A stretch of DNA of 64,000 bases. Origin: Monocercomonoides exilis PA203 (Eukaryota; Protista; Preaxostyla). The number at the start of each line of letters is the position of its first letter. The first letter of the stretch is position 1. The DNA lies in the NCBI GenBank assembly GCA_001643675.2, contig LSRY02000037.1, positions 186,001-250,000 on the forward strand, in the 5' to 3' direction. Position numbers and translations under genes: made by a program. This document shows positions 3,915 through 48,227 of this stretch, piece by piece. The notes under the pieces are model-generated. The model did not search any database. It was not told where the DNA came from and was given only the letters and a program-made list of their open reading frames with translations.

Positions 3915-4867
3915 TATAAACAATTTAGGTTATTATTTATTTTCCACAATTTACTCTTTCTAACCGAATGAAAATCTGTCATTTTTGAAAAACCATTGTC
4001 AATTGGACACCTTTAAAACTATTTTTCATTAAATGAAGGAGCATCAAAGTGAATTTAACACATGCATAAATTAATATAATTGTTATATAATATTACCACA
4101 AAGTTATAATTAAAAATGATTCAGTAGGAATTTCAAAAGCTTCATTTGTTTCAAATTTAGATGATAAATAATGATCATTTTCATTGAATTATCTACTATA
4201 TTGAATTAAATGAAATGAAAATAGAATCATTAAAAATTTCATCTTATAAATAATTTTAATATAACAATTATATTAATTTATGCATGTGTTAAATTCACTT
4301 TGATGCTCCTTCATTTAATGAAAAATATTTTTAAATGTGTCCAATTGACAATGGTTTTTCAAAAATGACAGATTTTCATTCGGTTAGAAAGAGTAAATTG
4401 TGGAAAATAAATAATAACCAGAATTGTTTATATCATGGGAAAAAATAAGTTGTGTATATTAAAGATGACTTACTCATTTTATTTTAATAGAAAAATTCAT
4501 CAAAAGTCGGATTTTCAAAAATAATAATTATTTATTTCAAAAAAAATACAACACTGCAATTAAAAATTTGTATATGAATCGATGTCATATATGCTAACAT
4601 ACAACTGTGCAAATTGCTGGAAATTAATATTGAATATTTGTTGAGATATTTAAATTTTAAATTTTTGTCCGGATAAAAAAAAAGTCCGGATAAAAAAAAC
4701 CACCCTATTTGAATTTTTTTGTTGTTGCATCACTTCATTTTGATGAATCTGGATGATTAATCACTTTAAGCAAACATATGAATATTAATTTTTGTACCGT
4801 TTTGTGAAATGAATTGAAAAAGAAAATCAAAAATTGTGTGTCATGAAACTCCAAGTATCTCATTTTC

Positions 4868-13885: not shown

Positions 13886-15766
13886 ATGGGCTGCACCTCA
13901 AGTAAAAGTGCGACTTATTCCAATAAAACCTCGAACAAGTCACAAACAAGGCCCAGTGGATCTGTCGCAGCAAGTCAATCTCCTTTTAGAATTGCTGATC
14001 CTTCTGACTTTCAGGCAGGTGAAGATAAATTCGATGAAAAACCAAATTCATCTTCTAAATCATCTGAAAATGGAGATAAAAATGAAACTGTTGTAATGAC
14101 AGCAGGGCATTCTGTTGCTGAATATCAAATAATTCTTACTAAATTGAATACAAAAGAATCAAATCTTTTGGAGCAGCAGTGGCGGGCAAAAGAAGATGGC
14201 TACGGATCAAAATGGCTAGAATCTGAAATCGAAAAAGTGAGGTCGCAAAAAAGATTGATTGAATTAAAGATGGAAGTTGCAAAGAAAAACGAAGAGGAAG
14301 CTCTTCGGTCAACTGGTGAAGTTCCTTCTTCTGGAAGAAATACAGGCATGGGACTTACACGTTCTTATTCTACTTCGACTTCTCGACCTCGTTCAATGAG
14401 CGTTTCAAATTCATCTCGATTAAGCACTGGGAAAAATACAATACAAAGATCATATTCTTCTTCTGGCATGACAGCACCACAAAGACGAAGTGCTGCAACA
14501 TCTCCACTTGCCTCACAACAAAGGAGATCAGGTCTTCGTTCTTCCTCAAGCATTTACGATGACGACGACGATGATGACGATAAGATAAATCAAAAAGATG
14601 ATAGCGATGATGATTTATTCAATAAAAACAGAAGAAGACGACCAAATTCAAGTAGCTTTCAGGACCCAAGGGAGCAATCGAATCCTTCGACGATGGTTAT
14701 GTTCGGCTCTTCTTCTTCTTCTACACCCTCATCAAACGAATACAATTCACCGCCTCACTCAAGGGAGATTCCGCTGAAAAGCGAAGGGAAGAAGTTCAAC
14801 GTCACTCCCGCGACGAAGCAGCAGCTGATGGCGACAGAGCGGCAGCTGGACGACGAGAACCTGCTTGTGGCGTGGGGGGACTTCTCCAAAGTGACGCTGG
14901 TGAAGACGACGAACAACTCGAAGGTCTACTCGGCCGAATGGCGTGGGGCGCGTGTGTGTCTGAAGCGCTTCGACGACGCGTTCACAGATACGGTTGAGCT
15001 GGTGAAGGAGATCCAGGTGATGGAGTCTGTGCGGAACGACAACGTCATCTCGCTGCTGGGTGCGTCACTGAAGCCGCCGTTCATAGTGACGCCATGGATG
15101 GAGCGGGGCACGCTGGAGTCGGTGCTGGCGTCGGGCACGAAGCTGAACTGGAACACGAAATACGCCTTCATCTCGTCGATCGCGAACGCGGTGACGTTTC
15201 TGCACCAGCAGAAGCCGAAGCCTGTGTTCCACGCGGACCTGCGCTCGTCGCACATCCTCGTCGACCGCAACTGGACGCTGCACATCGGCGGCTTCGGCTG
15301 CTCTCTGCGGATGGCATTGCACAACCAGGCGAAAGGGGACGATGATGATGAAGATGAAGATGACGACGACGATGATGACACAGATAGCGACGACAGCTCT
15401 TCGTCGGGGAGGCAACCGGCGCTGGTGGTGCTGTCGAAGATTGCGGCGGTGGCGCCTGAAGTGCTGACAGGAACGGTGAAGAACAGGCGATACACAGACT
15501 ACTACTCGTTTGGGGTGATTGCGTGGGAGATAGCAATGTCGTCGGTGGCGTACAAAGGGATGAAGCGGGCGGATGTGATGCGGCGTGTGGTTGATGAGGA
15601 GCTGCGCCCTCCGCTGCGTGTGGAGAGAGGGGTGTATGTCTTTGAGGATGCGCAGATTCCGTCTGAGCTGGGGGCGCTGATTGAGGCGATGTGGGTGACG
15701 AAGCCGAGCGAGAGGATGAGGGTGGATGAGGCGAAGAGGAGGCTGGCGCTGATGGAGCCGAAGTAA
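13886..15766 (+). CDS. N-myristoylated tyrosine-kinase-like (TKL) pseudokinase, 626 aa
   Basis: MGCTSSK N-terminus; kinase fold motifs VCLK, E(alphaC), HADLRSSHILV, IGGFG, APE, DYYSFGVIAWE, LRPP. Confidence 0.85.
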   Translation: MGCTSSKSATYSNKTSNKSQTRPSGSVAASQSPFRIADPSDFQAGEDKFDEKPNSSSKSSENGDKNETVVMTAGHSVAEYQIILTKLNTKESNLLEQQWRAKEDGYGSKWLESEIEKVRSQKRLIELKMEVAKKNEEEALRSTGEVPSSGRNTGMGLTRSYSTSTSRPRSMSVSNSSRLSTGKNTIQRSYSSSGMTAPQRRSAATSPLASQQRRSGLRSSSSIYDDDDDDDDKINQKDDSDDDLFNKNRRRRPNSSSFQDPREQSNPSTMVMFGSSSSSTPSSNEYNSPPHSREIPLKSEGKKFNVTPATKQQLMATERQLDDENLLVAWGDFSKVTLVKTTNNSKVYSAEWRGARVCLKRFDDAFTDTVELVKEIQVMESVRNDNVISLLGASLKPPFIVTPWMERGTLESVLASGTKLNWNTKYAFISSIANAVTFLHQQKPKPVFHADLRSSHILVDRNWTLHIGGFGCSLRMALHNQAKGDDDDEDEDDDDDDDTDSDDSSSSGRQPALVVLSKIAAVAPEVLTGTVKNRRYTDYYSFGVIAWEIAMSSVAYKGMKRADVMRRVVDEELRPPLRVERGVYVFEDAQIPSELGALIEAMWVTKPSERMRVDEAKRRLALMEPK

Positions 15767-18486: not shown

Positions 18487-19892
18487 ATTGCGTCAGCTCC
18501 TATTGGGCAACAACATGATATCTGCTTCAAAAGAAAAGAAAGAAAGAAAGAAAAAGCTGAAGTTTTTGCGTTTCAAGGATTGTTTGTTGAAATTGTCTTG
18601 AGTTCAGGGAAATGAAATCTTTTTGCATTGTGGCACAAAGATTCCTTCATTTTTAATGGTTGTACTTATTTTCTGTATTTTCTGAGAGAAAGTGAAATGC
18701 TTCGAGTTATGAACACATTTTTTCTTTTTTCACTTTATGTTGAATCTGATGGATTATTTTTTGTGAATGAAATAGACTGATTTATAAATTGCATTTAAAA
18801 AAAATTTTTGCAAATTAGTTCTCGCAAAATCAACACGAATGCCCATTTATTTTTGAAGATATTCATTGTCAGGCGAAGGAACAATATTCTAAATCTTAGG
18901 AAAATAATAAAAAAAATGAATTTTCTTCAAAAATCTTTGTTTCAAATTTTTTTGAAATGAATAAACTCTATATGAATAACATGCGTTGTTTTTTTTCTGG
19001 TCAATTGAAAGATAAAGTCATCTTTGGTTGCACCATAACATAAATAAATCAATCAAAGAAAAACGATTTATCGAAGATTCCGAGGCTAAAAAGACGAAAA
19101 ACAATTCACATGTGAAGAAAGAAGCATCTTTTGTTCTTGTCTGCTTATAATGAAGGGTTTGCAAAAGTTGCATGCGGAGAATCACAAAGAATAATTTTCT
19201 GATGTTTTTTTGCAGCATATAGAATCAAAAGGAGCAAATAAATAATTTTAAAAGAAAAGGAATTATGAAGTTTATTAAAAAATAAAAAAATACTTCTTCT
19301 TCAAGCATTTTATGAGCAAATAATGCGAAAAGCTTCATTTTTGGTAATTTTTGGAATGAGAATGTCCACATTCCTCACCTTCATATGATTCATCTCTAGT
19401 AATGAATGTTGTGTATGCTTTTCGTAACTGTTATCGATTGTTCATATTTTATTTATTTATTTTTTATTTTCTATCAAAATGCAAATAATTTCATTCGTCA
19501 TAGGGAGATTGAAGCAAAAATGGTTTGAACGAACGATATTAATTTCTCTGTAACTGCCATTTCTTATGGCTTTTGCAAGGGGAAAAAAAGGAGGATTTTT
19601 TAATTTTTTGAATTTTCTTTTTATTTTTGTTTATCTTGATTGTTCAAAAATTGTAAAGAATTCCACTCTAATTGATGTATTTGCCTTATTTAGCAGAGAA
19701 ACAGGTATTATTCATTTTTTGAAAAATTCTTTTGGATTAACAAAGATTTTCTTTATTTTCATAATTTTTTTTTGATTGCTTCAATTTTTAAATAAAGGGT
19801 ATTCAGGAATTCAAATCTTTATATTATATATCACAGGATCAGTCAAACAAATTGCTTCAAAAGTTGTCCTGCACTCTTTGCCTTCAAGAAAA

Positions 19893-22800
19893 ATGTGGCA
19901 TCCTTATGCTTTTCGATGTTCTATTTTGTTTTGTGTATTTTTTGTCTTTTCAAATTCGTTTGCATTCGAGGGACAAAATAATTCGAAATTTGCTGAAATG
20001 AGCTGGAAGGAAACCAATCCATCGAAATTGAACGATGATGAAAAGAATAATTTATATGAAAATGATTATGAAGGAAATTTGAAGAATGATTCTGTCGAAA
20101 TTCAACAGAGGAAAAATGATTGTCTGGAAAAAGCAATAATTTCGTCAAAGCTTGAGTCTTGCATAACGTTGGTAAATTCATCGATCTATTTTCACCTGAT
20201 AGCAATAAGAACTCATTTCAGTGGAATGCCAGCACTTAATGCCGAAAGGTCGATTCTTTTTCTTTCGAATTGCCTGTTGGAAATGTTCAGCAAAGAATAT
20301 TATTCGCCAATCTGCTGTGACCAAAGTGGAGTTGCAATGAACAACATTTCTGCAATTAATAATGAAAACTGCAATGCGTTCCCATGCCTTGTGTCAACAA
20401 CAACGGTCCAAGAAAAGAGCAAAATTGATGTTGGATTTGTTGAAATGGCTTCTTCAATCTTTTCAGACATTATGGTGTCCTCCACCTCTCCATTTGTGGG
20501 AAGCGAACTGTTTTCACAAGTTGATGTTCACATGTGCGAATTCATGAACATCACAGCGCGACAAAAGCCAGCATTTGCAGCAAAAAGTATTTTGAAGCAA
20601 ACTTTGCAGAAAAACGTTGTTTCTGGATGTATTTTTTGCTATTGTGCCAACACGTTCGATGGAGTGATTGTTGGAGCGGAAAGGGGAAGCGGATTTGTTT
20701 CGATGAACACCACCTTTTCTGAAGCCAAGAACTCATACAAAGATCAGCCTTTTACAAGTCCTTTGCCATCATTTATATCTGGAGATATTGTGTTTGTTGG
20801 ATGCACATTCACCAACTGCTCTTCTTCAGATCGAAATGGAGGAGCAATCTCAGTGAAAGGATCAGCCAATCTGAATGTGACAGATTGTTCATTTTCAGGT
20901 TGCAGCACAAGGAACGACAAAAATACATACACAAGAGGAGGAGCCTTATATCATGACAATCAATTTGTCTGCATCATTGTGAACACAAATTTTTCAAAGT
21001 GTTATGTTAATTTGACATCAGTTTCATTTGGAGGGGCTATGTGTTTATTTTATGGTTTGTTTAGCATTTATGGATGTATGTTTTTTAATTGCAACACAAA
21101 TAATTACTGTGGAGCACTAAATTGCGAACATGGAATTTTGAAGTTATGCTCAAGTTCATTTTCAAATTGTGAATCAGTAGTCTATGGTGGATCTATTCAC
21201 ACACACAATTTAAAAGAAAAATCTTTTGCAACAGATTGCAGAATTTCGAATTCTCACACCGAAAGCCATTCAGGTGCAATATCGCAATCAATACCATTGG
21301 ACGCATCCATTTTATGCATAAAATATTGTTTTTTTCAAAACAATTCTGCTGACTCAAATGAAGGACATGATATTCATTACTGGAATCCAGATAGCACCAA
21401 AGTTACTTCCGATTGCATCAGATATTCCTTTTCACGTTCGAATAAAAACAACAGAGTCACAACAAATGTTGACAGAAGTGAATGGCTTCCAGACCCAAAT
21501 GCAAGTCCAGATCCAATCCTTGTGAATTCAGCGAAGTCTGGAGGAGACCACAACGACTGTGGAGGAACCGATGATGAATGCCGAACAATTGGTTTTGCAA
21601 TGAATCAGTGGGTAAGTTTCAAGCACCATTCAATAAGATTGGAAAGCGAATGCTTTGAGGAAACCGAAATAGAAGTAGGCGGAAGAAGTGTTTTGTTGAA
21701 GAAGAGTGATGGATTGGACAGAGTGAACATTTCGAGTCACACAGAATCCGGATCATTGTTTTTCGTTGAATATGGATCACTTGAGATGGAGTTATTTACT
21801 CTCATTCACAGCTCAAGCATTTCCATCAATTCATTTCTTTTTCAGGTGACTGGAATGTTTGGATTTGTGCATCTGGATAAATGTGTAATCACAAGTGATA
21901 CGCCTGATGGTATTTTCAACAGGCCTTTTCTAAGTGCTGACGAAGGCAGAATCTTTCTCGATGATTGTGAAGTCAAGAACATTGTCTTTTCAGACTGCTG
22001 CCTTTTGTCGACGAGCAACTGTGGAGAGATATGTGTTCATGGGGGAAACATCACAGAGATTGTGAGAAAAGTTGGAGATGGTGCCTTGATATTGAAGGCA
22101 TTCAAAGGAGAGGAGCGCCTTGAATGGGAAAACACAACGGTTAGTGGATGCAGATGCTTGAATGGAAATGGAGGGATGGCTTCCTTGACGCTTGCTGAGG
22201 GAAGTCAATTGTCGATAGGGAAAGAAGGGTTGACAACAGCAATGAAAAACTGTGTGGCCAATGATGGAGAAGGAAATGCGCAAAATGGCAAAGGGAGAGG
22301 AGGATGCATCTATCTGAAGCTGACAAACGCAGCAGATGATTTTGTGATTTCGAATCCAGGGTTTGAGAATAACAGTGCGCTGTTTGGGAAAGATTTTTAT
22401 GTGTATTCTCCAAATCTGAAGGCAAGTGTCACAAGAGAAAGAATTGCATATTATTCCACATTATTCACTGTTGACGAAGCAATGGGCACAGATGAAGGAA
22501 CACCAGAGGTGGTCATCCCGCTTGTTTATTGCCTGAGAGAAAGAGGAGAAAGAGTAAATGTCGGAAGCAACGGAGTGGATGTTGGAGTGTGTGGCTTTGA
22601 AGACTATCCGTGCAAAACAATGCAGTTTTCTCTCGCTCAACAGGAAAAAGTGCACAAATTGACAATTGCTTCGTCGTATTCCCTTTCAGAGTGTTTGAGT
22701 TTGATGGGAAATGAAGAATACAGCATCAGAGGAGTGAATGGAAAATCGGAAATAAGTGTTGTTGGAAATGGGAGCGAGCAGAGTGGAGTGATTGAGGTGA

Positions 22801-24038
22801 TGAGTGATGTTGGCATTAGTCTTGTGAGCTTGTCCTTGGAGGCATGGCTACAATCATCGCAAACGGCAGTGTTTGTTGTGGGAGAGGAAGTCGAAGGAAG
22901 CCTGCAGATATCATCATCACTTGTGAAGGGAAGCAATTCAATTTCGGAGATTGGGTACTCTCTTGTTGTTGTGAAGAATGGAAAAGCTGAATTGAATGAT
23001 ATGGAAGTCGATAGTCTAGCATTCAAGGAGCCCATGATCATCTGCGCTCAAATGGGCACAAAAGTCAAAGCAGTTAATCTTGTTTGCACCGATGTGTTGA
23101 GCTCCGAATCTGGTCTGATAAAGGCAGAAAGTGATTCAGAATTGCTGATAAGTGGCTCGAAGTTTGAAAGCACAGGAAGGAACAAAGGGTCTGTAATCAG
23201 CATCAACAAGGCGAGAAACAGCATTGTCAATCGAACCATATTCAGTGGATGCTTGCTTTCAAGTGGAGATGGAGGAGCGATTCAGGGTGTTATTGGACAA
23301 GGCCAGAAACTTGAGGTTGAAGGAGGAGAGATGAATGGGGTCTGTGAGAAGGGAAATGGAGGAGGAATGAAGATAGTGATGGAAAAAGATTCTATCTTTT
23401 ATGTTGGAATCGAAGGATTGGCGAAGTTGAAAGGATGCCAAGCTGGAATGATTGGAGACAAGGGAGGATATGGAGGAGGGATATGGCTGGATTGTGTGAA
23501 ATCCACGGGCGACTTTCGGCTGAAAAATGTTGAATTTGCAGGTTGTGTTGCAAACAAATGTGGGAAAAACATGTTTGTGAAGACAGAAAAAATGGGGAAT
23601 GTGATTGACAGCATGAGGATTGGATTTGGTCCAGATCTTTTGAAAGAAGATGAGATTGCGGGAACAGAGAAAGAAGATGAAGGGTATGTGATTCCACTTG
23701 TGTTATTCTTGCGAGAGGATGTTTCAGAAGTTGCAGTTGGTGGGACAAATAAAAAAGATTTTTCCCGATGTGGGTATGCAGGGTATCCATGTGAAACAGT
23801 TCAGTTCGGGATTGCACAATGGAAAAAGGCAAGTGGAATAAGCTTGAAGATTAGTGAATCTGGAATTCTTGGATCAGAACTGTTATTGGCGAGTGGATCG
23901 AGCACATTCAGAGGAGCTGAGTTGGAGGCGAGGATGGATGTGTATGAAAACATAACAGTGAATCAGAGTGCTATGATTGAAGCGAGTTCAAATTGTTTGT
24001 TTGAGTCTCTTTTTTTGGTTGTTCCAGAGAGTCTTAAT
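19893..24038 (+). pseudogene. 5' part (1382 codons) of a giant receptor-like surface protein interrupted by the DIRS element
   Basis: Signal-peptide-like start MWHPYAFRCSILFCVFFVFSNSFA; GGAI/GGG..Y/F..N beta-helix repeats; CG....PC.T modules; the frame stops at the TGA formed by the first bases of the element. Confidence 0.85.
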
Positions 24039-24128
24039 TGAAAAAGAAAATGTGAATCTCACTTCCTTCTCTTCTATTTACGAGAGAGATCATCACTTAA
24101 GGGTCAGTCACCCAACTGATCTGAAATG
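24039..24128 (-). repeat. DIRS 3' inverted terminal repeat
   Basis: TCTCACTTCCTTCTCTTCTATTTACGAGAGAGATCATCACTTAAGGGTCAGTCAC is the exact reverse complement of 28649-28703. Confidence 0.9.
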
Positions 24129-24297
24129 CAAAATAGTAATAGATTACAACGGTGATGTGAAATAGCTAAAAAGGATAGAAACATTAAAAAACATAACAAT
24201 GTTATGGCGCTCATTACATATCACGCCTGAAGAAGAAGGAAGATGGGTCATTAACAGAATCTGTTTATAATAAGGGTGGGAGTGTATCGAGGCGGGA

Positions 24298-24404
24298 AGA
24301 AGAGAAGGAAGTGAGATTCACATTTTCTTTTTCAATCAAAGCGCAAGCACTTTGATTTAAAAGAAAACATTCTCTCACTTCCTTCTCTTCTATTTACGAG
24401 AGAG
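24298..24404 (-). other. DIRS internal complementary region (ICR): head-to-tail complement of both element ends, i.e. the circle junction
   Basis: 24298-24336 is the reverse complement of the left end and 24335-24404 of the right end; they overlap at the AT at 24335-24336. Confidence 0.9.
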
Positions 24405-24749
24405 TTCCATAATTGGGAGAATACTCTGCTGTTGTTATTATTTGATTGACCTCTTATTTGTCATCCCTCAGCAATTGTTCGAGTTGCTCACGTTTGGCTT
24501 GCGCTCTGGTTTTAATTGTTATCTCAATTGTTTTCTTCTGGACAACTTCTCCAACTAGTCTTTTCTCACGAAAATTCCTTCTTTCATACTCTTTATGACT
24601 GTTCTCGTCTGGCTCCTCCACGTAGTCTGGCTTTGATGGTTCTTCTTCGTCGTTGTAGATCGTTTGGCTTTTGTTGTCATATTGCAGATTAGGTTTTTCC
24701 AACCTGATCCTGATTCCTTTTTCGCTCTCGATGTTGTCAGACTTTGAGT

Positions 24750-27700
24750 TCAGACTGTAGTCCTCTCATCTTGCTCTTCGTCAGTTGACGAAGAGTCCTC
24801 AATATCTTCTGAACTTGAATTGTCATCAAAGGTAATTTTTGGTTTGCGAAGGGTTTGCAGACTTAAAGGTGATGACTGGGTCTGGGAGGAAGTTGCATTA
24901 ATAGCCGCTTGATCTGCAATCACTTTCGCACAGGATGTGGCGATATCTTTTTGAAAATAGTAATTAATAATGGTATCGCTTCGTGGAGACAGCCTTGCGA
25001 ACTTTGCCACTTGCGCTATTGGTAGTCCAGCCATTGTCAATGCAGATATTGAAGCATGCTTTATCGAGTAAGGACCAAAATAATTCGGTATACCTGTCTC
25101 GTGAAGGAGATTTGCAACAAGTTTTCTCAGCACTCTTGCGGAAAGTGGAATCTTTGTGCGATCGTTAATAAACAAGTGGTCAGGGTTGTCTTGAAGTTTG
25201 CTTATTCTGGACCACAATTCACACACTGCTGAGGCAGGACATATTGAAGGAGTATCTGTGAGAAACGGTATTATAATGTCTGTTCTTTCGGGTCCTGTTT
25301 TCAGCGAAGTATCCAATGCAATTGAATCTTCTCTCACTGCAGAATGTTTCAGACTGATCCGCTCGAGCTCGGTGAACCGGCAGGCGGAGAATAGCATGCA
25401 AAGACAAATTGTTTTCTTCGTGAGAGTAGTGAAGGATAAGTTCGCGTTCTCGCCTAGCCCCGATATATAATCAAGAAGTATTTTGGGGTTCCATATATCA
25501 GGCTTATTTTTCTTCTTCCTCCTTTCCAATCTTTTAAATGATCGGAAGAGAAGCTTCATAAGCGGGTAATCTCCCAAACTTCTCTCGAATAATAATTGAG
25601 AAATGAGAGAGATGGCAGATCGTATTTTACAAAGGGATTGCTCCTTCAGCCCCTTGTTGAAAAGCTTAAGGAAAACATCGGCACATCTAACGACCCAATT
25701 GAACCAATCTCCAACAGAAAGACCATAGCCGCAGTTTGTCCACTGGTCTCCGAAATGAGCATAACTGAGTAAGTACCCATGCCACGTCGAAGGCGAAAGA
25801 CTGGATTTGCACAGATCACATATATCCATTGGAAATCCTCTTGTTTGCAAAACTCCTTTGAACCAGTGTTCTCCATTGATCGCTAAGGATTCATCAGTAC
25901 AACTCGAAGCTTCCCTGGTGGCAGGCAAGCATCCATCCTCTTCATCCATGGTCCCGGGGTAAGAAGTTCGCTCTGGCTCTTCCACATCCATTCTATATGG
26001 GTCGTTCTTTTCAACAACGGCTCCCATATTTGTCCCTTCCAATCGGGAAGAAGGAGAAGACCTCGAGCTCGTTCGAGAATCATTTTCCTGATTGTCGGAA
26101 GAATGAGAGGAATTGGAGGATGAGCAAGAACTGTCTCTCCTCGCCAAGGCTGCTGCAGACCGTCTTCGTTTATCGGGCTTCCTGGCCCGCACCATCTGCT
26201 CACTTTCTTGTTTTGTTTTGTGGCGAAAGCGTCCAACGTTATGTTCAATCTCATCTTCGTTACAAGCTCCTTGTAGGATTCTTGCTTTATCTGATAGTCG
26301 CCTCCCCTTTCTAGCCTGGAAAGAGAATCGGCCCTTTCGTTTCTTTGACCGGGGATGTGTTGCGCTTTCACTTGAATCTGCATCGTGTGCGTTTGTTTCC
26401 AAATCTTCAATAGGAGTCTTCTCAAATTCGCTCCTGCCCGCCACCTGTTCAGGTTGAACACCGATGTTGAGTTGTCCGATCTGATAAGTAGTTTGTGGAT
26501 GCGATTGGATAACAGAATTGGGGAGAAGTGAGTTAGAGCTGACAAAATTGCGAACATCTCCCGATAGTTTGAACTTTGATTTCGTTGCCAATAGGGGAGT
26601 CTGCGATGAAAATCCAAAATACTGTTTCCGATTCTTAAATAAGCTCCAACAGCTTTTCTGGAAGCATCCGTCGTAAGTGTTGCATCTGGAAGAAAGAGTG
26701 GGCATAGTTGTCTTGGCGTGTTGGTTTTCAACCTCGATATCCATTTGGTTAGATTGGGGAGAATGGACTGGTTGATCCTCATCTTCCCTCTCCATCCTAC
26801 CATCGAAACCATTTTGTTTAAAGTGCGATAAAGATCTGAGAGAAACAGAGAAGCTTCTCGAACCACGAACCTTGTAGCGTTCAGCTTTCCAATGAACGCT
26901 GCAAGGTCTCTTACTCTCACTTCTTTCGCTCTGAGGGACCTCCTCCTCCATCTGGTACATTCCTTTATAAGTTCTTTCGTTCTCATCATTTCCAGAGCTA
27001 CATTGAACTGGTGCGTGTTCCACTCGAAACCCAAATAGGTGAAAGTTTGTGAGGGAATCAAATGACTCTTTTCTGTGTTTACCAGAAGACCAAGGCTTTC
27101 GAAAAGAGAAACGACTTTCTGAGTTATCCATTTTAATTTCTTTTGGTCTTGGTGAAGAAGAATAATATCGTCGAGGTACGCGATTGCTCTTACGTTCCAT
27201 TGCTCCCGGATGAATTGTATCACCTTCCTCATGATTTTTGTAAAGATTCTTGGAGAATCTTTGTATCCAAATGGCATTCCGTTGAAACAGTAGTAATTTT
27301 CGTTGAATTCGAACGCAAGAAACGGCTTGAAGTTGTCGTCCACTTTCACTAAATAGTAGGCCTGGCTTAGGTCTAAAGTTGTTGCATAATCTCCTCTTGT
27401 TATAATTCGTTCTAGTGACCTGTAATCCTCCAGTTTGAAATGGATTGACTTCGTTGCATTGTTCAACGCTCTGCAATCGATAATTTGTCTCCATCCCCCT
27501 TGTTTTTTCTTTATCACAAACACTGGATTTAAATGTTTCACCTTTCTTTTCTGTATTTTTTGTATTATGTTCGTTTCGAGCTGATTCTGGATCAGCTTTG
27601 CCATCGCTTTGGTTGCTTCCCCTGATTGATGGGGGCTGTATGTTTCCATTTTTGAGTTTAGTAATTTCTCCCTGGCTATCCTGTTTTTCCAAATTGGAAT

Positions 27701-28022
27701 GACGCCTCTTTTTACCAACTTCTCTCCATCTATCATTCTCCACGCTTCTCGAAAATATTCCGTTCTTCCTCCAACAATTGAAGGTGACTGGCTTAGTTGG
27801 TTCCCGTTCCCCTGGATCGCGTTTGAGAAGGACTTCTGCGGTATGTATTTGAGGTTTTTCTCCCTGCCCACGACCGGGGACCCGAACGAAAAAACCGAGG
27901 GCGTTGGTAGCTTTCATGTTTTCCATATCTGCTTTTGCCAAAGGATTTGGAATTAAATGAGAACGAAGTCCATCTTTTCGCTGTTGATTGTGAGGTTTTC
28001 CTGACCTCTTCCAATAAATCAC
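24750..28022 (-). CDS. DIRS ORF3: long N-terminal region overlapping pol, plus C-terminal tyrosine recombinase (first ATG at 27926)
   Basis: SAM-like N-domain, then CRFTEL, LKT, ICPASAV, GPYSIKHASIS, TIINYY. Confidence 0.85.
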   Translation of the reverse strand: MIYWKRSGKPHNQQRKDGLRSHLIPNPLAKADMENMKATNALGFFVRVPGRGQGEKPQIHTAEVLLKRDPGEREPTKPVTFNCWRKNGIFSRSVENDRWREVGKKRRHSNLEKQDSQGEITKLKNGNIQPPSIRGSNQSDGKADPESARNEHNTKNTEKKGETFKSSVCDKEKTRGMETNYRLQSVEQCNEVNPFQTGGLQVTRTNYNKRRLCNNFRPKPGLLFSESGRQLQAVSCVRIQRKLLLFQRNAIWIQRFSKNLYKNHEEGDTIHPGAMERKSNRVPRRYYSSSPRPKEIKMDNSESRFSFRKPWSSGKHRKESFDSLTNFHLFGFRVEHAPVQCSSGNDENERTYKGMYQMEEEVPQSERSESKRPCSVHWKAERYKVRGSRSFSVSLRSLSHFKQNGFDGRMEREDEDQPVHSPQSNQMDIEVENQHAKTTMPTLSSRCNTYDGCFQKSCWSLFKNRKQYFGFSSQTPLLATKSKFKLSGDVRNFVSSNSLLPNSVIQSHPQTTYQIGQLNIGVQPEQVAGRSEFEKTPIEDLETNAHDADSSESATHPRSKKRKGRFSFQARKGRRLSDKARILQGACNEDEIEHNVGRFRHKTKQESEQMVRARKPDKRRRSAAALARRDSSCSSSNSSHSSDNQENDSRTSSRSSPSSRLEGTNMGAVVEKNDPYRMDVEEPERTSYPGTMDEEDGCLPATREASSCTDESLAINGEHWFKGVLQTRGFPMDICDLCKSSLSPSTWHGYLLSYAHFGDQWTNCGYGLSVGDWFNWVVRCADVFLKLFNKGLKEQSLCKIRSAISLISQLLFERSLGDYPLMKLLFRSFKRLERRKKKNKPDIWNPKILLDYISGLGENANLSFTTLTKKTICLCMLFSACRFTELERISLKHSAVREDSIALDTSLKTGPERTDIIIPFLTDTPSICPASAVCELWSRISKLQDNPDHLFINDRTKIPLSARVLRKLVANLLHETGIPNYFGPYSIKHASISALTMAGLPIAQVAKFARLSPRSDTIINYYFQKDIATSCAKVIADQAAINATSSQTQSSPLSLQTLRKPKITFDDNSSSEDIEDSSSTDEEQDERTTV
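25883..27871 (-). CDS. DIRS pol: reverse transcriptase, RNase H and N6-adenine methyltransferase-like domain
   Basis: PVFVIKKK.GGWR.IIDCRALN, LDLSQAY, MPFG..DSP, YLDD; RNase H TDAS, NYRE, RSDN, HIPG..N..ADSLSR; MT-like DAFAT..NKK, DGL..PW, AHPP. Confidence 0.92.
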   Translation of the reverse strand: MGREKNLKYIPQKSFSNAIQGNGNQLSQSPSIVGGRTEYFREAWRMIDGEKLVKRGVIPIWKNRIAREKLLNSKMETYSPHQSGEATKAMAKLIQNQLETNIIQKIQKRKVKHLNPVFVIKKKQGGWRQIIDCRALNNATKSIHFKLEDYRSLERIITRGDYATTLDLSQAYYLVKVDDNFKPFLAFEFNENYYCFNGMPFGYKDSPRIFTKIMRKVIQFIREQWNVRAIAYLDDIILLHQDQKKLKWITQKVVSLFESLGLLVNTEKSHLIPSQTFTYLGFEWNTHQFNVALEMMRTKELIKECTRWRRRSLRAKEVRVRDLAAFIGKLNATRFVVREASLFLSDLYRTLNKMVSMVGWRGKMRINQSILPNLTKWISRLKTNTPRQLCPLFLPDATLTTDASRKAVGAYLRIGNSILDFHRRLPYWQRNQSSNYREMFAILSALTHFSPILLSNRIHKLLIRSDNSTSVFNLNRWRAGANLRRLLLKIWKQTHTMQIQVKAQHIPGQRNERADSLSRLERGGDYQIKQESYKELVTKMRLNITLDAFATKQNKKVSRWCGPGSPINEDGLQQPWRGETVLAHPPIPLILPTIRKMILERARGLLLLPDWKGQIWEPLLKRTTHIEWMWKSQSELLTPGPWMKRMDACLPPGKLRVVLMNP

Positions 28023-28632
28023 TTTGCCTTTTCGTTAGGAGCGGTGATGCTGAATCCTCTTTCATTCTCGCTGCTTCGGTAAATCCAAATCTCGCTTGGA
28101 TGCGAGCGTTTCTGGCTTCTTTCAAGGCTTGTGCAAGCAGTAAACATGCTTGCGCTACGGCACTCTGAGCTTCATCATCTTTTGTTTTCGTATGGGCAAA
28201 TAAAATAAGTTTCATTGCGGGGTAAAGAAACGTCTCACATCTTTCTCCTGCTTGATCTAAGGCGTCTTTGTACGGACTGGTAGTCCTTACAAAAGGTGGA
28301 GGCGCATTAGGGAGGAAAGGGGATAAGTCTTCTGTCTTCAACGAAGCAACCAAGTCATTTATCTCCTGTTCCGGTAATGGAAGATCATATAACGATAATT
28401 CCGGTGCTCTACCAAATATTTTAAGAAACGAATTTTCCAGTGTAATTTCTTCTTCTTTTTCTTCGCCAAGGGTGGTAGAAGGTGGGGAGAGTGAGGATGA
28501 AATAGAAGAAGGTTGGGAAGCGGAAAAGGGTCCGGGAAATGTCGGAAACCCGCTTGTTGGACCACCAGGCAGCGCAGCTGCGCTCGGTTCGGCCGCAAGT
28601 CCTGTTCCCAGAGGATTGTTAGGGATCATCAT
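27793..28632 (-). CDS. DIRS ORF1 (gag-like), 279 aa
   Basis: First ORF after the 5' ITR; Pro/Ser-rich N-terminus, helical core and basic C-terminus; assignment is positional. Confidence 0.7.
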   Translation of the reverse strand: MMIPNNPLGTGLAAEPSAAALPGGPTSGFPTFPGPFSASQPSSISSSLSPPSTTLGEEKEEEITLENSFLKIFGRAPELSLYDLPLPEQEINDLVASLKTEDLSPFLPNAPPPFVRTTSPYKDALDQAGERCETFLYPAMKLILFAHTKTKDDEAQSAVAQACLLLAQALKEARNARIQARFGFTEAARMKEDSASPLLTKRQSDLLEEVRKTSQSTAKRWTSFSFNSKSFGKSRYGKHESYQRPRFFRSGPRSWAGRKTSNTYRRSPSQTRSRGTGTN

Positions 28633-28741
28633 TTTTAGATCAGTGATCGTGACTGACCCTTAAGTGATGATCTCTCTCGTAAATAGAAGAGAAGGAAGTG
28701 AGAGAATGTTTTCTTTTAAATCAAAGTGCTTGCGCTTTGAT
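28630..28741 (-). repeat. DIRS 5' inverted terminal repeat with a terminal hairpin ATCAAAGTGCTTGCGCTTTGAT
   Basis: Reverse complement of the left ITR core; its outer end is matched by the ICR. Confidence 0.9.
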
Positions 28742-31700
28742 GGAAGAGAATGGCTGATGAAGATGAGTGCTGAAACACTGAACCTCACAAACTGCCAATA
28801 TTCAGCGAGATTTGCATCCTTTGTGAGCGTTGGGCTTGTGCTTTGTGTTGGAGGAAAGATGGAGATATGTGAGTTAAGTGTGAATGAAGTGGAGTTTCGA
28901 TTGCATCCATTGATGAGGATTGAAGAAGAAGCTGTATGCAATATGAATGAAAGTGTTTTGAATGGAGTTATTACGAATGGAGAAGTGAGTGTAATTGAAT
29001 TGCATTCGTCAGGGATACTGACATTGGCAAAAACAACAATGAGTGGGAAGAGAGAGAGAGCATCAGGAGGAGGGATGATCTGCGATGTGAATGGAAAGAC
29101 ATTGACTGTTGAGGATTGTTCGTTTTGTGGTATTTGTGTGAGCATGCAGAATGGAAGCGCCATAAACGGAAATATTGGTGATGAAAACAGTGTTGTTGTG
29201 AGAAACAGCACTTTTGATGATTGCTCTGCGAATGATGGGTGTGGTGGTGGAATGATGGTGACTTTGAGTGGAGAAGGAATGCTGCGAATTGGAGAAGAAG
29301 GGGAGAGAATGGATATAAAGAAGTGTAATGCTCGCGATTTGAGCGAAGAAAAAGAAGGAAGAGGATATGGGGGAGGAGTTTTTGTGAGAATTGTGGAAGA
29401 AGCATATGATGTGATCTTGCGAAGTATTTCATTTGGCCTGGGAGAAGAAAGTAACGGGGCAGACAATGGAGGGAACAATATTTTTGTGGAAGCGAATGAG
29501 CTGAAGAAGATTGCAGCAGACACTGCGTTCGATTTTTCGTTTGCCAAGAGCGAAGAAGAAATGCCAAACTTGAAGGATATGATGGGCTTTGAAAGTGGAA
29601 ACAAGTTCCAAGCAATTCCGTTGGTGCTGCTGTTTCGGAACTTTTCGAGTCCTGCATTTGTTGGAAATGATGGAATAAATGGGAAATTGTGTGGATTTTC
29701 TGATTATCCGTGTGCAGATGTGTTGTTTACTGGGAAAACAATTTTTGGTCAAGGCAGTGCAATAATACGGTTGCTTCCGCAATATGAAATCACGAACCAG
29801 CTGAAGATTGAAGAGCAAGAGATGAAGATAGATGTGGAAGAGATTGGGGTGGAGGTTGCGATTGCGAGTAACGGGAGTATCAATGGAGAAGGATTTATTG
29901 AAACGCGTTCAGCAACAACATTTGGGAAAATGATGTTCAGTGTTCCATCCTCGATGCCAGACAGAAAAAGTGCGCTGTTTGTGTGTTTCAGTTCATCGCT
30001 TGTGATGAACAATGTTTCGTTCATATCCAGAACGAACGTTGTCAGTTTCTCGCTCGTGAAAGTTGTTGGAGGAGAATCCAGTTTGGTTGGAGTGAAAGTG
30101 AGGGATATGAAATTCAGCACAAATAGCTTTTTTGTGATTCAGGGAAATGGGGCAAGTGCTCAGTTAAATGGAATGGAATTGGAGGGTGTTAATGGAGAAG
30201 ATGTTTGTGGGCTTATCCATGTGAATTCAGGAGGTTCAGTCAGTATTGTGAATTCGAGTGAAAAAGGAGCAGACATGAAGAATGGAGCAGTGCTGTGTTT
30301 TGATTGTTCGTGTGGAATTCAGCTGCAGAACAACAGTGTGACCGCAGTGAGCAGAGAGGTTGGGAGTGGAGGAGGAGTTGTGGGGAGGGCTGGGGAAGGG
30401 AAAGTGGTTGAGATGAAGGAATGTGCATTTGAGGCAATTGTCTGTGCTGAAGAAGGAGCAAAAGGTGGAGGATTGGTGGTGCATGTGGAGAAAGGAGGAA
30501 CACTGAAGTTTGAAGGGAACAGTGTGAAATTCAATGAGGTGAGTGAATCAGGAGGATATGGTGGAGGGATGTTTTTGGAGTTTGAGGATACTGATTTGAG
30601 CTATTCGATGCAAAAGAACAGATTTGGTGAGAACAAAGCATTGCTGGGAAGGGATGTGTATGTTGTGTGTGAGGATGTGAGGAGGATGCTGAATGAAATT
30701 CTTTGGGAAGGATCGGTGAATGAAGAAGATGAGAGAGAACGATTTTGGGTGTATGATGGCTCAGTTTCCCCAGCGATAAATGTGTCGATACTGGTGATAT
30801 TGTTTCCTGAATCTCCAAAGATAATGTTTGTGGATGGAGCAAAAGTGAACAAAGAGGAGTGTGGGTTCGAAGAAACACCGTGCAAGGATGTTGGATATGC
30901 CTTTTCATTGATGAATGACTCGCACTCGACAATCAGGGTGATTGGAAACACAACTTTGGATGCAGATATCGCAAGGAATGCATCGTTGGCAATTCAGGGA
31001 AGAGGCCTCACAAAGCCGATTATTGGAGTTGGAGGAGGCGGTCATATAACATTGGTCAGCAGCCCCATTTTCTTGAGCATACGGAGCTTGGCATTTGAGC
31101 TTCCAGCATCTCCCACAACAGCTGGTTATGAAGAGCTTCTGAAAATAGAAGGAGGGCAGTGTCTGATAAGTGAGTGTGTGTTTGGGGTTGAGAATGGAAT
31201 AGAGAGCATGATTGAAAAGGAAAGTTGTGTTTGGATTGTGAAAGAAACAGACGGAAAGCTGGAAATGAAGTCAGTGAGTGTTGTTGGGATTGGCTTTCAA
31301 ATGGGAAAGGGAATTGCTGATGTGGAAAGAGGAGTGATCAGTTTGTCTGAAGTGGAAATCAAAGGTGTTTCGACAGAAGGAAAGAGTTTGATATGTGGAG
31401 GAGAAGGAGCAGAAATAGTTTGGAGCAATGTTAGAGCAAGTGGGTGCAGCATTGAAAATGGTCATTTGTTGGAAGCGAAAAAGGCAGGAAATGTGGAAAT
31501 AGCGAATGAAAGCTGTTTTGAAGGGTGTGGAGTGAGTGTGGCGAATGGGGGGATGATGTGGTGTGAACTGGGAGGAAATGATAAGTTGTTGATGAAAAAC
31601 TCCACAATGAGGAATTTTTGTGTTGATGGTGAAGATGGGAGAGGAGGAGGAGTGTATCTTCACATCGGAAACGATTCGACTGACAATTTCGTGTTTGAAG

Positions 31701-34700
31701 ATTTGTTGTTCTCAGAGAATAGTGCGCGAGAAGGGAAGGACATGTTTGTTTTCTGCAAGGCATTGAACATAAGTGTGTCTCCCATTCGATTTTGTTTTGT
31801 GGCAGAAAATGAAGAAGAAGGAAATAGAGCTGATTTGTGGGGAAGTGATGAATCACATTATTTTGATCCAGTCAATTTGAGATTGTTTCTTGTTCAACTG
31901 CATACAGAATGTGTATATTTGTCAGTTGAAGGATATGATGCAATTGGATGTGGGTTGGAAGAGCATTCATGTCAAACACTATGGCGGGGTGTCCAGAACA
32001 TCAAATCTGGAAAGGATAACTCAGAGATTGTTATTTTGGAGAAGGCTCATGTGAAAGATGGGAGTGATGTGTCAGGAATTAGGATTCGATCAGCACAAGA
32101 TGAGGTGCATTCTTCTTTGCTGTTTGAAGAAAATTGTGAATTCAATGGGGATGGGGCTATTGTGAACAGCAAGAAATCAGAGTTTGTCTTTGTCGACTTT
32201 GCATTTCCGCATTCACTGAGAAATGGAGTGAAAGCGCTTATTTTGTCTGAGTCCACAAATGGTGACATGAAGATGAGCAATTGCATATTTGAATGTTCTC
32301 AACAAGAGACTGTCGAGTTTGTCTTGTTGGAAATGAATGGAGGAGAAGTGACTTTGGACCGGTGCAGTTTCAAAGGGCAGATGGTTTTTGGTTCTCAACC
32401 ACTGAAATTGACTGGAACAGTGAATATGAATAATTGCTCGTTTCAGGCAGTGGCCTCAGCACAAAATGGAAAAGGGGGATTGGCGAATGTTATTCTTGAA
32501 AATGAAGCAGAACTGCAAGTCAAGAACTGCGCAATTCAAAAATGTGAATGCTTAACTGAAAGAGGCAGGGGAGGCGGATTGTTCATTGATTGCAAGAAGT
32601 CCAAAATTGCTGGATCTGTCTTATTCAGTACTGTTATCTTTGAAGGGAACAAGGCAGATGTTGGAGAAAATCTGTTTGTTGAATCGTTTGATCTGAACAG
32701 CACTGTGACAACAGACACTTTTGATTTTGACTTTGAACCACTGAAGAGCAATGCAAATGGGTTTGTTGGAAGTGACAAGGTGTTCAATGAAACAGATTTG
32801 TTCAGATTTGTTGTGGGATACAGAAGCGAAAGGATATATGTGTCAGATGAAGGGCATGATGTGGCTCGATGTGGCTCAGCTGAAGATCCTTATCAGAGTT
32901 GGCGGAAAGGTGTTAGGCAGATGAGCGAAGGGACAGATAAGCGTTGGATATTTATTTTGGGGAAAGTTGAGCTGAATGAGGTGTTTGAGATGACTGATTG
33001 CTCGATCGAAGCATGGAATCCTGTGGGAGACGAGGTATCGAAGGTGAAGATGGTGATTGAAAACGATGTGAATGAGAGCAGAAAAGCGTGCCTTTGGAAC
33101 AAAAACACAGCAAGGATTGCTCGAGTCGAGTTTGAAATGGAAGGGGAATATGACAATGAAGAGAAGGCAGTGATTTTGAGCGAGAATGGGAGCTTGAGCC
33201 TGGTGAACTGTTCAATTGAAGGATTGGCAGAAAAGAGGATTCAGATGCTTGTGTCATTTGTCTGTGTGAGAGAAGGAGTCTTGGAGATAACGAATTTTGA
33301 TGTTTCGAATTTGAATTGTGAGAGAAGTCTTCTTGTTGTTTCAGAGAGATGTGAAAGCAGGATTGAGGAGCTTGTGATAAAAGGATTGAGTCTGAACGAA
33401 GGAAGTGTGATCGAAGTTGAGGGAGCAAGCAGGAGCAATCATGAGCAAGCAAAATCAATGAAAAGCACTCCAACTCTATTGCTGGAGAAATGCCATGTGA
33501 AAGATGTGAAGAAAGATGTGGGAGGGGCATGTGTGATTGATTCGAGTGCAAATAAGGAAAGTTTGAAGCTTGTGGTGAACAGAAGTGTGTTTGATGAATG
33601 CAGAAGCTCAAACAGTGAAGAAGGAGGAGCCATTCTGTTTGTGTTGAAGAGCGAGGGAAGTCTGAGGATAGAAGAGAGCACGCTGAGCCAATGCGGATGC
33701 TCGACAGCCAAAGGCAGAGGAGGAGGGATTTGTGTGGATGCAGCTGTTTCTGGGGATCTGAACATGCGATTTGTGAAGGATGGATTTGATTCCAATGTTG
33801 CGCGTGTTGGGCGGGATTTGTTTGTGAAGTGTGTGGATATCAAGAAGCAGATCAATGAAACACAGTTCAATCTGGATCTGAGAGAAGGATCATACAACAG
33901 ATACAATGCGATATATGGAGTGGATGAGACAGAGTTTGTGGATGAGCCGATGAATCTGATCGAGTTCATTGTCACATATCAAAATGATGTTATTTTTGTC
34001 ACGTCAAATATCTCCAAAGGCAGCGAAGACTCGAAGAACTGTGGCACACAAAAGCAGCCATGTGCCACATTGGAGTACGGTCTGCAGCATTTGTCATATG
34101 AGTTCAACAGCCAACTTGTGATAATCGAAGAAGGGCGAATATCGGCTGAGCTGGAGTTATGCAATGTGACCATTTCATCCCGTTCAGAGCAGCATGCCAA
34201 AGTCGGAGTGACTTCAGGAATTCATGAATCAGCCGAGAGCCTATTGAGCTGCGCCGACAAAGTGCTTTTGACTCGTCTGTTTGTTTTATTTGAGAGTTCG
34301 TATGCGATGGCGCATGGTTCATTTCTTCGAAGTGAAGCAGGAGCGGTTCAGATTGTTTCATGTTCATTTTCATGTGAAGAAACAACAAGAAATGATGAAT
34401 CAGATTTGTTGTTAATTCTGCTGTTGGTCACTGGAAATGGAAGCTTATCAATGGAAGAAGTGAACATTTCTCATGTTTCAGCAGTCAGTCAGTTAATTGT
34501 TGTGGAGTCAAATGCTTGTCTGAAGTGTTCATCTATTTCAATTCAGGATGTGAGTTGCAGAAAGAGATTGATATGTCTGAGCAGTCATGGAAAAGTGACT
34601 CTTGAAAAAATGGAAATGAGCAATGTTATGATCAGCGAAGAATCTGCCATTCAAGTGTATTCAAGTGATGCGAATAGAAATGGAGATGAGGAAGAAAGAA

Positions 34701-36976
34701 ATGAGATAGAGATAAGCCAATTGGTGTGCGAGAATATTAGCGTTGGGTTGATTTCCTCAGTCATTGCCTGTGATAGGTTGAAAGACAGCTTTGTGAAGAT
34801 TGAGAACAGCTCGTTTGTGTCATGTTCATCATCTGCTGAAAGAGGAAGTTTGGTGATGATGAGCGCCTGCCGAAATGTGTCAATGAATTTGTGCAGGTTT
34901 GGAGTGAATATGCAATCCTTTGATGAAACTGTGAATGATGAAGGAGAAGATATATGTGAATGGGATGGATCACTTGTTGATATGAAGGGCACAGTTGCAA
35001 GCATGAAAGACACAACCATAGAGAATTCAAGTGAAGGAGGTTTGTCTATTTCAGGAGGGCAGGTTATGATTGAAGAAGGAAGGTTCATGAACAACAATCC
35101 AGTGATAGGGAAATATCCATCGATTCGAAGGAACATTGTTTGCAGCGATGATGCGACAGTGAATGTTGTGAGCCTGAAGGGCGGAGATGGAGCGAAAGAA
35201 AACAGCTCGTTGTGGATGCTGAACAAGGGGTGCAAGGCGGAAGGGATGCTGGAAGGGCTGAAGTCTGTGCTGTTTATTCCTGTTCTGGATTCAGTGAGCA
35301 TGGCAGAGGAAGGGGCTGTGATGAGTCTGAGCTTCCGAGGGGCGCTTTTCATTCCGTGCAAGCTGGGGTTTGAGATAGTGGCAAGAATGGGAAGCACAAA
35401 GCTGATCGAGAAGTGGGAGTTTTCGGAGGGCGATTTTGCATCAGAAACAGAAGTGCACTCGTCGATTTCGTCTGCGATGGTCACTTCTTCACCCGATGAG
35501 TCGGAAGTGGCAGCAGCGATCATATTTGGAGAAAAGAATGCAGAAACGGATCTGTTCGTTCTGAAGAACAGAAGTGAACCTCAAACAAGGGGAGATGGAA
35601 AACTTGTTGAAGGAGGAAAAGAAGGGAAATCGTTTTGGCCAATCATTGTAATTGTTCTTGTTGTTATTTTACTGATTGTTCTTATTGTTGCAGTTGCATT
35701 TATTGTTCGATGGAGGAAAGCAAAGAATGAAGCTGAAGATCTGAGAGAGATTGTGAATGATAATATCAGAAAAGATCCGAAGGCATTTGAGATGGTGACA
35801 ATGGAGATGTCACCTGAGGAGCAGTGGAGGAGAGCTGAGAGAGAGGCAGAGAAGAAGAATGAAGAGAGGATAAAGAAGAGGGTGTATGAGAAAAGCTTGG
35901 GACACTCGGAGTCATCTGAGCATCTTCTGTCCGAGAGTGGCTCAACTGAATATATTTTGGGAAGAGATTCAGACAAGATCCCCGAATGGGTGCTGGAGAA
36001 GGTTGATGATGAGGAAGAGACAAGAAAGAGAACACCATCACCATCCATCTCATCCACCTCAACCAGTTCAACGACTGATTCGGATTCAACATTTGTTCGA
36101 TCAGAGTGTCTGTGTCCAACCACCTCATCGATGTCGAATCTGGTGGATGCAATGGCCTGCTCATCTCCACATGAAAAGCTGATTGTGGATCTGAGGGATT
36201 CGCTGTTCATGCTGCTTCATGGAAGGAACGAGAAGAAAGAGATGGCGATAGGCACACTGGAGGAGCGGGAGGTGACAGCTGCTCAGATCATGTTCTGGGT
36301 GGCGAACGGGGTGCTTCATTGCTTTGACGAGCTCAAAGTGGCGCTTCAATCGCTGGATGGCCTGAGCCCGCACATTGTGCTGTTCTCAGAGCACATGGTG
36401 ATCTGCATTGCGATGCACTCAGACTGCTCGACAGACTCGGATTCATCGTCCATCTCATCATCAAGGACTGTTGTGACATCTGCCAGTGATGATGAGGAGG
36501 ACTCTCTGCCCTCGTCAGCATTTGAGGATGAGGACGAATTCAAAAAAGAGTGCCTTCGGTGGAAGGCGCCGGAGCTGGTGAGTGGAGCGAAGAAGCATGC
36601 GACGAAGAAGACAGTGGTGTTTTCGATTGGGATGATGGTGTGGGAGTGTGTGACGCTGAAGATGCCGTTTGGGGAGTATGACGGGTCGGGGGCAGGGGAG
36701 CTGATTGTTGAAGGGGCGAGGCCAAGCATGGAGATGATGGAGGGGTCGAGGCTGTCGGGATGTGTGAAGGAGTGTGTACTGCAGAAGGGCAGGGAGCGGC
36801 CAGAGCTGGGGAGGCTGAAGCGAGAGTTTTTTGGGTATTTCCCATCGGGAGCAACGATGGTGACAGCGACAGACGCGATTGGGCTGTATGAGGGGAGCGA
36901 TGTGTTCTATGGAAGTGGGGGTATTTGCAGCAGCAGCTGCGACAGCGGCAGCACATGCACAGAAATGGGAGGATGA
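28742..36976 (+). pseudogene. 3' part (2744 aa) of the interrupted giant receptor-like protein: beta-helix/Cys-module ectodomain, TM helix, cytoplasmic degenerate kinase
   Basis: In frame with the 5' part once the element is removed (ESLN|GREW); TM FWPIIVIVLVVILLIVLIVAVAFIV followed by RWRK; kinase C-lobe motifs RWKAPEL, VFSIGMMVWE. Confidence 0.85.

Positions 36977-38005: not shown

Positions 38006-48227
<10,222 letters not shown>

Follow-up and report, generated by a model that had tools for sequence, protein, structure and literature searches.

A model for DIRS-1, the retrotransposon of Dictyostelium discoideum, was reportedly put forward by Cappello in 1985. DIRS-1 and other DIRS1-like elements carry gag, reverse transcriptase-RNase H-methyltransferase (RT-RH-MT) and tyrosine recombinase (YR) open reading frames (ORFs), with a long overlap between the YR and pol frames and the catalytic YR domain in the non-overlapping 3' end. 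The outer part of their inverted terminal repeats (ITRs) is divergent. These elements further possess a right extension and an internal complementary region (ICR) near the 3' end that consists of the two end complements side by side, and they insert without target-site duplication (TSD) (PMC3266345). A 3-bp identity between circle junction and target has been proposed for them, in a model with an NTT trinucleotide and no TSD, but is an unproven property (PMC3266345). Here we analysed a 64,000-nucleotide (nt) stretch of the genome of Monocercomonoides exilis PA203 (contig LSRY02000037.1, positions 186,001 to 250,000; hereafter the window), in which an element of this general layout interrupts a giant receptor gene. 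It is very probably one of about ten near-identical autonomous-type DIRS1-like copies, inserted conservatively. Positions are those of the window, and coordinates on its contig (C33) and copy labels (L001 etc.) are given where needed. The element departs from those described in several respects. Whereas three matching bases had been proposed, identity with the target is needed at just one base of the junction trinucleotide; in sense orientation, the junction is AAT, where NTT is usual; YS[IL]K stands in place of the HSTR box; and protein-coding genes, not other DIRS copies or centromeres, harbour the young copies. The host belongs to the oxymonads, and DIRS1-like elements in Excavata were unconfirmed in 2011 (PMC3266345); our literature search for DIRS or retrotransposons in Monocercomonoides returned nothing relevant.

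A search of the whole 82.3-Mb genome (101 contigs) revealed ten full-length copies at an identity of at least 98%, in addition to one internally deleted copy, L011. All copies begin with T-TGAAAAAG and finish with CTTTGA-T. The host junctions of the window element are CTTA-AT|TGAAAA on the left and CTTTG-AT|GGAAGA on the right, exactly as read in an earlier note on this DNA. In four paralogs of the host gene (L032-L035, 92-97% identical), the two flanks abut directly as ...GAGTCTGAAT^GGAAGAG with a single AT, leaving one T at the position of the shared T. A 38-nt pattern joined from the flanks of the sister copy L004 found its empty site inside the window (Table 1), and the flanks of L005 abut in at least eight paralogous empty sites. 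In these three insertions, integration is conservative, with neither TSD nor target deletion. The absence of a TSD claimed by the earlier note is borne out by these exact empty sites and by the comparison across copies, which all have the same ends.

Further comparison of the target sites covered 18 independent insertions of one clade, ten young and eight from related subfamilies, with the circle reference C T T T G A T T G at positions -6 to +2. The T at position 0 is invariant (18/18, P 3e-10). It is preceded by T at -5 (11/18, P 0.005), -4 (13/18, P 2e-4) and -3 (15/18, P 3e-6) and by C at -2 (9/18, P 0.002), and followed by T at +1 (14/18, P 3e-5) and a purine at +2 (16/18, P 0.001); A at -1 was found in 6/18, against a background of 0.31. 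The invariant identity of circle and target is a single T, not AT, and target sites conform to TTTCN|TTR, a loose imitation of the junction that echoes CTTTGA|TTG of the circle. The uninterrupted identity ranges from 1 nt (L005, L011) to 7 nt (L008). A 3-bp identity is not required, the middle T of the trinucleotide being shared in 18/18, its A in 6/18 and its outer T in 14/18. To our knowledge, target choice and cutting by DIRS recombinases have never been measured, and the 3-bp circle-junction model has only the element ends as its basis. The present finding that one base of identity suffices refines this model, and the target mimicry of the element junction limits the mechanisms to be considered and opens them to testing. 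The near-identical copies, the exact empty paralogous sites and a culturable host with public long reads make up an unusually clean natural data set.

The occupied host gene has a T at -3 (24035), as do the circle and 15/18 targets, whereas all four empty paralogs L032-L035 have a G there. Given 12 window-private differences in 800 nt between occupied and empty paralogs, this difference is only suggestive (roughly p 0.02-0.05); the T is either a site-improving mutation or a patch copied from the element.

In the ICR, the left end (24039-24075) recurs as its reverse complement at 37/37 positions, and directly behind it the right end (28669-28741) does so at 72/73. As both end complements stand side by side, the ICR spells the end-to-end junction ...GCGCTTTGA-T-TGAAAAAG..., and AA at 24334/24335 stands for T(+1)T(0) of the circle. 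The same layout is present in subfamilies L014-L016, L023 and L025-27. The ITR part of the ICR accounts for the only long direct repeat of the element (24057-24091 and 24373-24407). The ITR cores are complementary at 55/55 positions, as the earlier note had stated; its exact match of the ICR to both ends needs correcting by one mismatch at the inner end of the ICR. The ITRs are not specially short either, since at lower identity they extend to ~85 nt at 88% (left ITR at contig 210042-210126 versus query 4595-4679), and the conserved ITRs of DIRS1-like elements cover 32-202 bp (PMC3266345).

The palindrome of the right extension, once joined to the left end, forms a 13-8-13 near-palindrome, as spelled by the ICR. 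This joined form has a predicted DNA hairpin of -7.7 kcal/mol (z -3.3), with the crossover within the stem. The motif AATCAAAG-N8-CTTTGAT occurs at 31 genome sites, compared to 0 in the reversed control; nearly all of these are right ends or ICRs of the element's clade, and two further sites lie at C2:440363 and C20:130131. As the boundaries lie 6 nt outside the 8-bp spacer of the terminal palindrome, a crossover within this spacer was rejected; removal of the element as an intron was likewise rejected, as its ends are not GT...AG.

Eight of the copies differ by 0-4 substitutions in 4.7 kb, in agreement with the young lineage proposed in the earlier note. The remaining copies diverge by 0.2% (L009), 0.5% (L008) and 1.6% (L010), and older subfamilies are present at 65-84% identity. 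A (GA)n tract in the ITRs (24082-24085 and 28669-28672) has three states between copies L001-L011, and within each full-length copy the left and right ITRs share the same state. This co-variation implies that both ITRs are renewed from one template in each cycle, and thus that ITR identity acts like the clock of long terminal repeats. The host ORF has no decay on either side of the element. Altogether, near-identical copies, ITR co-variation and the undecayed host ORF support a very recent burst of the family. The deleted copy L011 (G000:C8:329585-333971) has lost 316 bp between a 35-nt direct repeat, 24057-24091 in the left ITR and 24373-24407 in the ICR, which takes out the left half of the ICR. 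Copies L006 (C57:481648-486349) and L009 (C95:1765-6463) have the right flank in common, resemble each other in the left flank and are 0.2% apart; L009 is full of single-base indels, and the pair probably reflects either duplication of a segment or an alternative contig that was left unpolished.

Removal of the element joins ORF 19776-24038 to 28742-36976 in phase; the two host pieces were searched apart, and their continuity follows from frame arithmetic. The product is predicted to be a type-I membrane protein of ~4100 residues, a giant β-helix/pseudokinase receptor. Of the ten independent young insertions, eight hit members of this one receptor/pseudokinase family; their positions differ, and six are in antisense and two in sense orientation relative to the host gene. 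Such a concentration of fresh insertions in one giant receptor family is new. A first look gave 1447 candidates for the receptor tail, of which 93 were scored, all at least 71% identical (71-79%), and 5425 candidates for the ectodomain piece; the ectodomains are 22-37% identical, compared to 71-79% for the tails. With the genome share of the family bounded from these first-look counts and the published composition (PMC8767320), eight of ten corresponds to P ~1e-5 at a share of ~15% and ~2e-4 at 22%. As M. exilis has 35% "unclassified repeats" overlapping "tyrosine kinases" (PMC8767320), the excess becomes only borderline if the share is 35% and all other genes are intolerant of insertions. Older subfamily insertions adjoin family genes in only 3/14 cases. 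It is possible that the young lineage actively seeks out the giant receptor family; tolerance of insertions or rapid turnover of hit genes are the alternatives.

A precedent for locus preference among YR retrotransposons is the type 1 Ngaro of Cafeteria burkhardae, of which 91% reside in virophage EMALEs (PMC8547959). It belongs to a different superfamily and has a different kind of target, and in the present case the pattern may reflect tolerance instead of preference. Since the receptors are the largest surface-receptor gene family of the host, the fresh insertions are relevant to its turnover. The window copy and L004, the latter in a paralog at C33:411083-415783, 200 kb from the window host gene, are two of the ten young copies that sit in close paralogs (89-95% protein identity) on one contig. 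Another member of the receptor family ends at the window start (window 1-629; C33:185265-186629).

Pfam search assigned the 662-residue ORF to a reverse transcriptase (RVT_1, E=2.7e-31) followed by an RNase H (RT_RNaseH_2, E=1.9e-6), both of the Ty3/gypsy-related type; RT_RNaseH_2, RT_RNaseH and RVT_3 were found in 5/5 subfamily members, each near or just under the cut-off. Behind the RNase H, where DIRS and PAT elements carry the methyltransferase, a DAFAT...HPPIP motif is conserved, and the Dam-like match is sub-threshold (E 0.0076 in this copy, 0.0011 at best, in 4/5 subfamily members). The recombinase frame matches Phage_integrase at E=3.3e-6, which identifies a tyrosine recombinase, and its motifs ACRFTELERI, LKT, YS[IL]KHAS and NYYF are kept across subfamilies of 50-58% identity. 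The gag-like ORF1 (279 residues) gave no match in the Pfam search. On these features the element is assigned to the DIRS1-type tyrosine-recombinase retrotransposons, and the order gag - RT/RH/MT - YR - ICR, together with the inverted repeats and the right extension, places it in the DIRS1-like group. The complete DIRS element recognised in the earlier note is confirmed, with RT, RNase H, YR, ITRs and ICR all identified and the Dam-like match below threshold. Ngaro, VIPER and PAT-like elements likewise use a tyrosine recombinase instead of a DDE integrase and replicate via RT, but their direct repeats are split (A1-B1A2B2), and a methyltransferase is missing from Ngaro and VIPER, in contrast to the inverted repeats, ICR and sub-threshold Dam-like region found here. 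Membership in these groups was rejected because the ends are inverted, without split direct repeats; that in the Cryptons, which are YR DNA transposons, because an RT is present and conserved.

Table 1. Features of the element and its host gene in the 64,000-nt window
Feature	Position	Strand	Remarks
Full-length DIRS1-type retrotransposon	24039-28741	-	4703 nt, shared T counted once; same boundaries in ten full-length copies
Shared T, position 0	24038		Last host base at left junction, identical to the element's last base 28741
Left ITR	24042-24126		~85 nt, 88% to right ITR; perfect core 24057-24111
Right ITR	28633-28717		Core 28649-28703
ICR	24298-24407		24298-24334, left-end complement; 24335-24407, right-end complement
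Right extension	28718-28741		Palindrome ATCAAAG-N8-CTTTGAT
gag-like ORF1, 279 residues	27793-28632	-	50-98% conserved among subfamilies
RT / RNase H / Dam-like ORF, 662 residues	25883-27871	-	RT 27023-27514; RNase H 26315-26686; putative Dam-like region ~25886-26242
Recombinase frame	24750-28022	-	Catalytic domain 24995-25427; 1090 codons here, 1193 in siblings, stop to stop
Out-of-frame remainder of recombinase ORF	24454-24702	-	Holds the C-terminal motif kept in subfamilies
Private 1-nt deletion	24764/24765	-	Siblings have one more plus-strand C; CC context, not a long homopolymer
Host gene, 5' part	19893-24038	+	Signal-like N-terminus; β-helix-like ectodomain with GGA[IL] repeats
Host gene, 3' part	28742-36976	+	One transmembrane helix ~35636-35707; C-lobe-only kinase-like tail 36536-36826
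Empty site of sister copy L004	36301-36338, between 36319 and 36320	+	L004 flanks abut with 2 mismatches

The recombinase frame is open, with 0 stops, over the whole RT/RH/MT ORF (25883-28022, +2 frame, ~700 codons), whereas 33-38 stops are expected in this frame by synonymous-codon shuffles in three lineages (L008, L014, L027). The overlapping recombinase peptide is conserved at only 34-53%, yet it is free of stops; this N-terminal extension of ~700 residues is basic. Such a "long ORF overlap" of the YR frame on pol is a published trait of about half of the known DIRS1-like elements (PMC3266345). The deletion at 24764/24765 is limited to this copy, all ten other copies having the extra C. It ends the frame 99 codons early, after ...DERTTV, and among the lost codons is a C-terminal motif that subfamilies L014 and L027 keep; the break falls downstream of the presumed catalytic Tyr (NYYF). 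Accordingly, the earlier statement that all ORFs are open holds only in part. As the conserved C-terminal tail is missing, this copy may itself be defective.

In the account that we favour, the insertion was very probably a conservative recombination of the ICR-templated end junction (...CTTTGA-T-TGAAAAAG...) with a host site, in which no base is gained or lost. The recombinase would recognise in the target a weak copy of its own junction arm, contacting TT(T) at -5 to -3, and strand exchange would take place directly 5' of the T, so that T-T-R would be the few bases needing to pair after the swap. Most likely, only the strand with the polarity of first-strand cDNA would be exchanged, and replication would follow; the pattern would fit a cut 5' of the T on the window plus strand, which has this polarity. 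We propose a single-strand route of this kind only tentatively.

Several points weigh against this account. The target sample consists of 18 sites from one clade, and current activity is inferred from copy identity only. The Pfam score of the recombinase is barely above the threshold (27.4 versus 27.1 bits). Its canonical HxxR box reads YS[IL]K; variability of this box has already been reported in DIRS1-like elements (PMC3266345). AlphaFold prediction of the recombinase region from a five-sequence alignment reached a predicted local distance difference test score (pLDDT) of 36.6 and did not confirm the fold, and a phmmer search of this region against the PDB returned chance matches only (E>0.5). 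The M. exilis assembly is Nanopore-based (PMC8767320), and most other single-base differences between copies fall in homopolymers; the frame-breaking single-base indels in several copies, possibly including the deletion at 24764, could be assembly errors. Moreover, both partners carry the same T, so that the sequence does not reveal the exact point of strand exchange.

Known tyrosine recombinases make cuts staggered by 6-8 bp. Two exchanges 6-8 bp apart without identity should give two junction classes, whereas a single class was seen in 18/18 insertions, with the bases at -2/-1 kept from the target at the left junction and from the element at the right. Consequently, either both exchanges fall within 1-3 bp, or a single strand is exchanged. 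The former would correspond to integration of a double-strand circle with both exchanges within a 1-3 bp overlap, which is the textbook 3-bp model of DIRS with relaxed identity. This is a serious contender, although we think it rather less than probable. It fits the junction trinucleotide ATT, fully shared in three of the ten young copies, the published elements that start and finish with NTT (PMC3266345), and the absence of a TSD; however, the first and third bases need not match, the overlap is at odds with the cut stagger of the known enzymes, and double-stranded circles have never been detected (PMC7192593). The earlier note had taken circular cDNA via the ICR as established. This stands for the role of the ICR, which is experimentally essential in Dictyostelium, but overstates the circles, as most of the cDNA found there is linear and single-stranded, and amplification of a circle junction did not succeed (PMC7192593).

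A folded single-stranded cDNA might instead integrate in the manner of integron cassettes or the CTX phage, with replication finishing the reaction; we regard this as possible but doubtful. The ITR stem and the terminal palindrome would then set two TTTNN|TT half-sites facing each other across a 7-8 bp overlap, and the recombinase would swap only the strand of cDNA polarity 5' of the invariant T, pairing just T-T-R. If true, this would account for a match of only one base, for junctions of a single class and for the single-stranded state of the cDNA in Dictyostelium, and integration would be effectively irreversible. Integron attC x attI and CTX-phage/XerC recombination likewise employ a tyrosine recombinase, possibly on a folded single-stranded site, with 1-3 identical bases by one cleavage point, one junction class and completion by replication. 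For DIRS the likeness is a tentative one, drawn from the junction pattern, the hairpin and the single-stranded Dictyostelium cDNA (PMC7192593).

The earlier note had also suggested a reversible knock-out, in which the recombinase excises the element precisely and thereby restores the receptor gene. The insertion is conservative, so the reverse reaction would restore the ORF exactly; nevertheless, we consider it very unlikely. All empty sites are paralogs at 92-97% identity rather than alleles, the near-palindromic junction site exists in the joined form only, the recombinase frame of this copy is truncated, and excision of DIRS elements is not reported in the literature searched. In addition, a host with many hundreds of paralogs has no obvious need for reversal.

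Slightly less likely still is the capture of linear cDNA by end-joining or microhomology, free of the recombinase. The 1-nt overlap does look like microhomology, and the mostly linear, single-stranded cDNA of Dictyostelium would suit it (PMC7192593), but the ends are exactly alike in every copy, the targets neither lose nor gain bases, a 7-8 bp target consensus resembles the element junction, and the recombinase is strongly conserved. Neither ragged ends nor target deletions were seen among the copies compared.

The 2-bp AT core proposed in the earlier note as common to circle and target is scarcely tenable as the crossover rule of the recombinase. AT stands at both junctions of this copy and of L004, L008 and L010, but tabulation of the 18 target cores leaves its A at background. 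C or T precedes the T in six other young insertions and in 6/8 subfamily insertions, and L005 shares the T alone, yet its flanks abut exactly in the empty sites. As a general rule AT is broken by L002, L003, L005, L006, L007 and L011. Even in the window copy, circle and target do share AT, but not only AT, as TT at -4/-3 is shared as well. Least likely of all is a spread of copies by segmental duplication or gene conversion among receptor paralogs, which would draw on the eight of ten hosts that are paralogs of one family and on the shared flanks of L006 and L009, but is excluded except for that pair, as the other insertions lie at different gene positions, in both orientations and with unrelated flanks, and the nearest paralogs are empty at the same site.

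Outside the element and its host gene, the window contains an ORF for a DDE_1 (pogo-type) transposase (1976-3208, minus strand), a complete protein-kinase ORF in a GC-rich island (13883-15766, plus strand; GC 0.49) and a kelch-repeat ORF (45869-47530, minus strand). Two large ORFs on the minus strand, 38006-45628 and 54843-58544, have no Pfam match.

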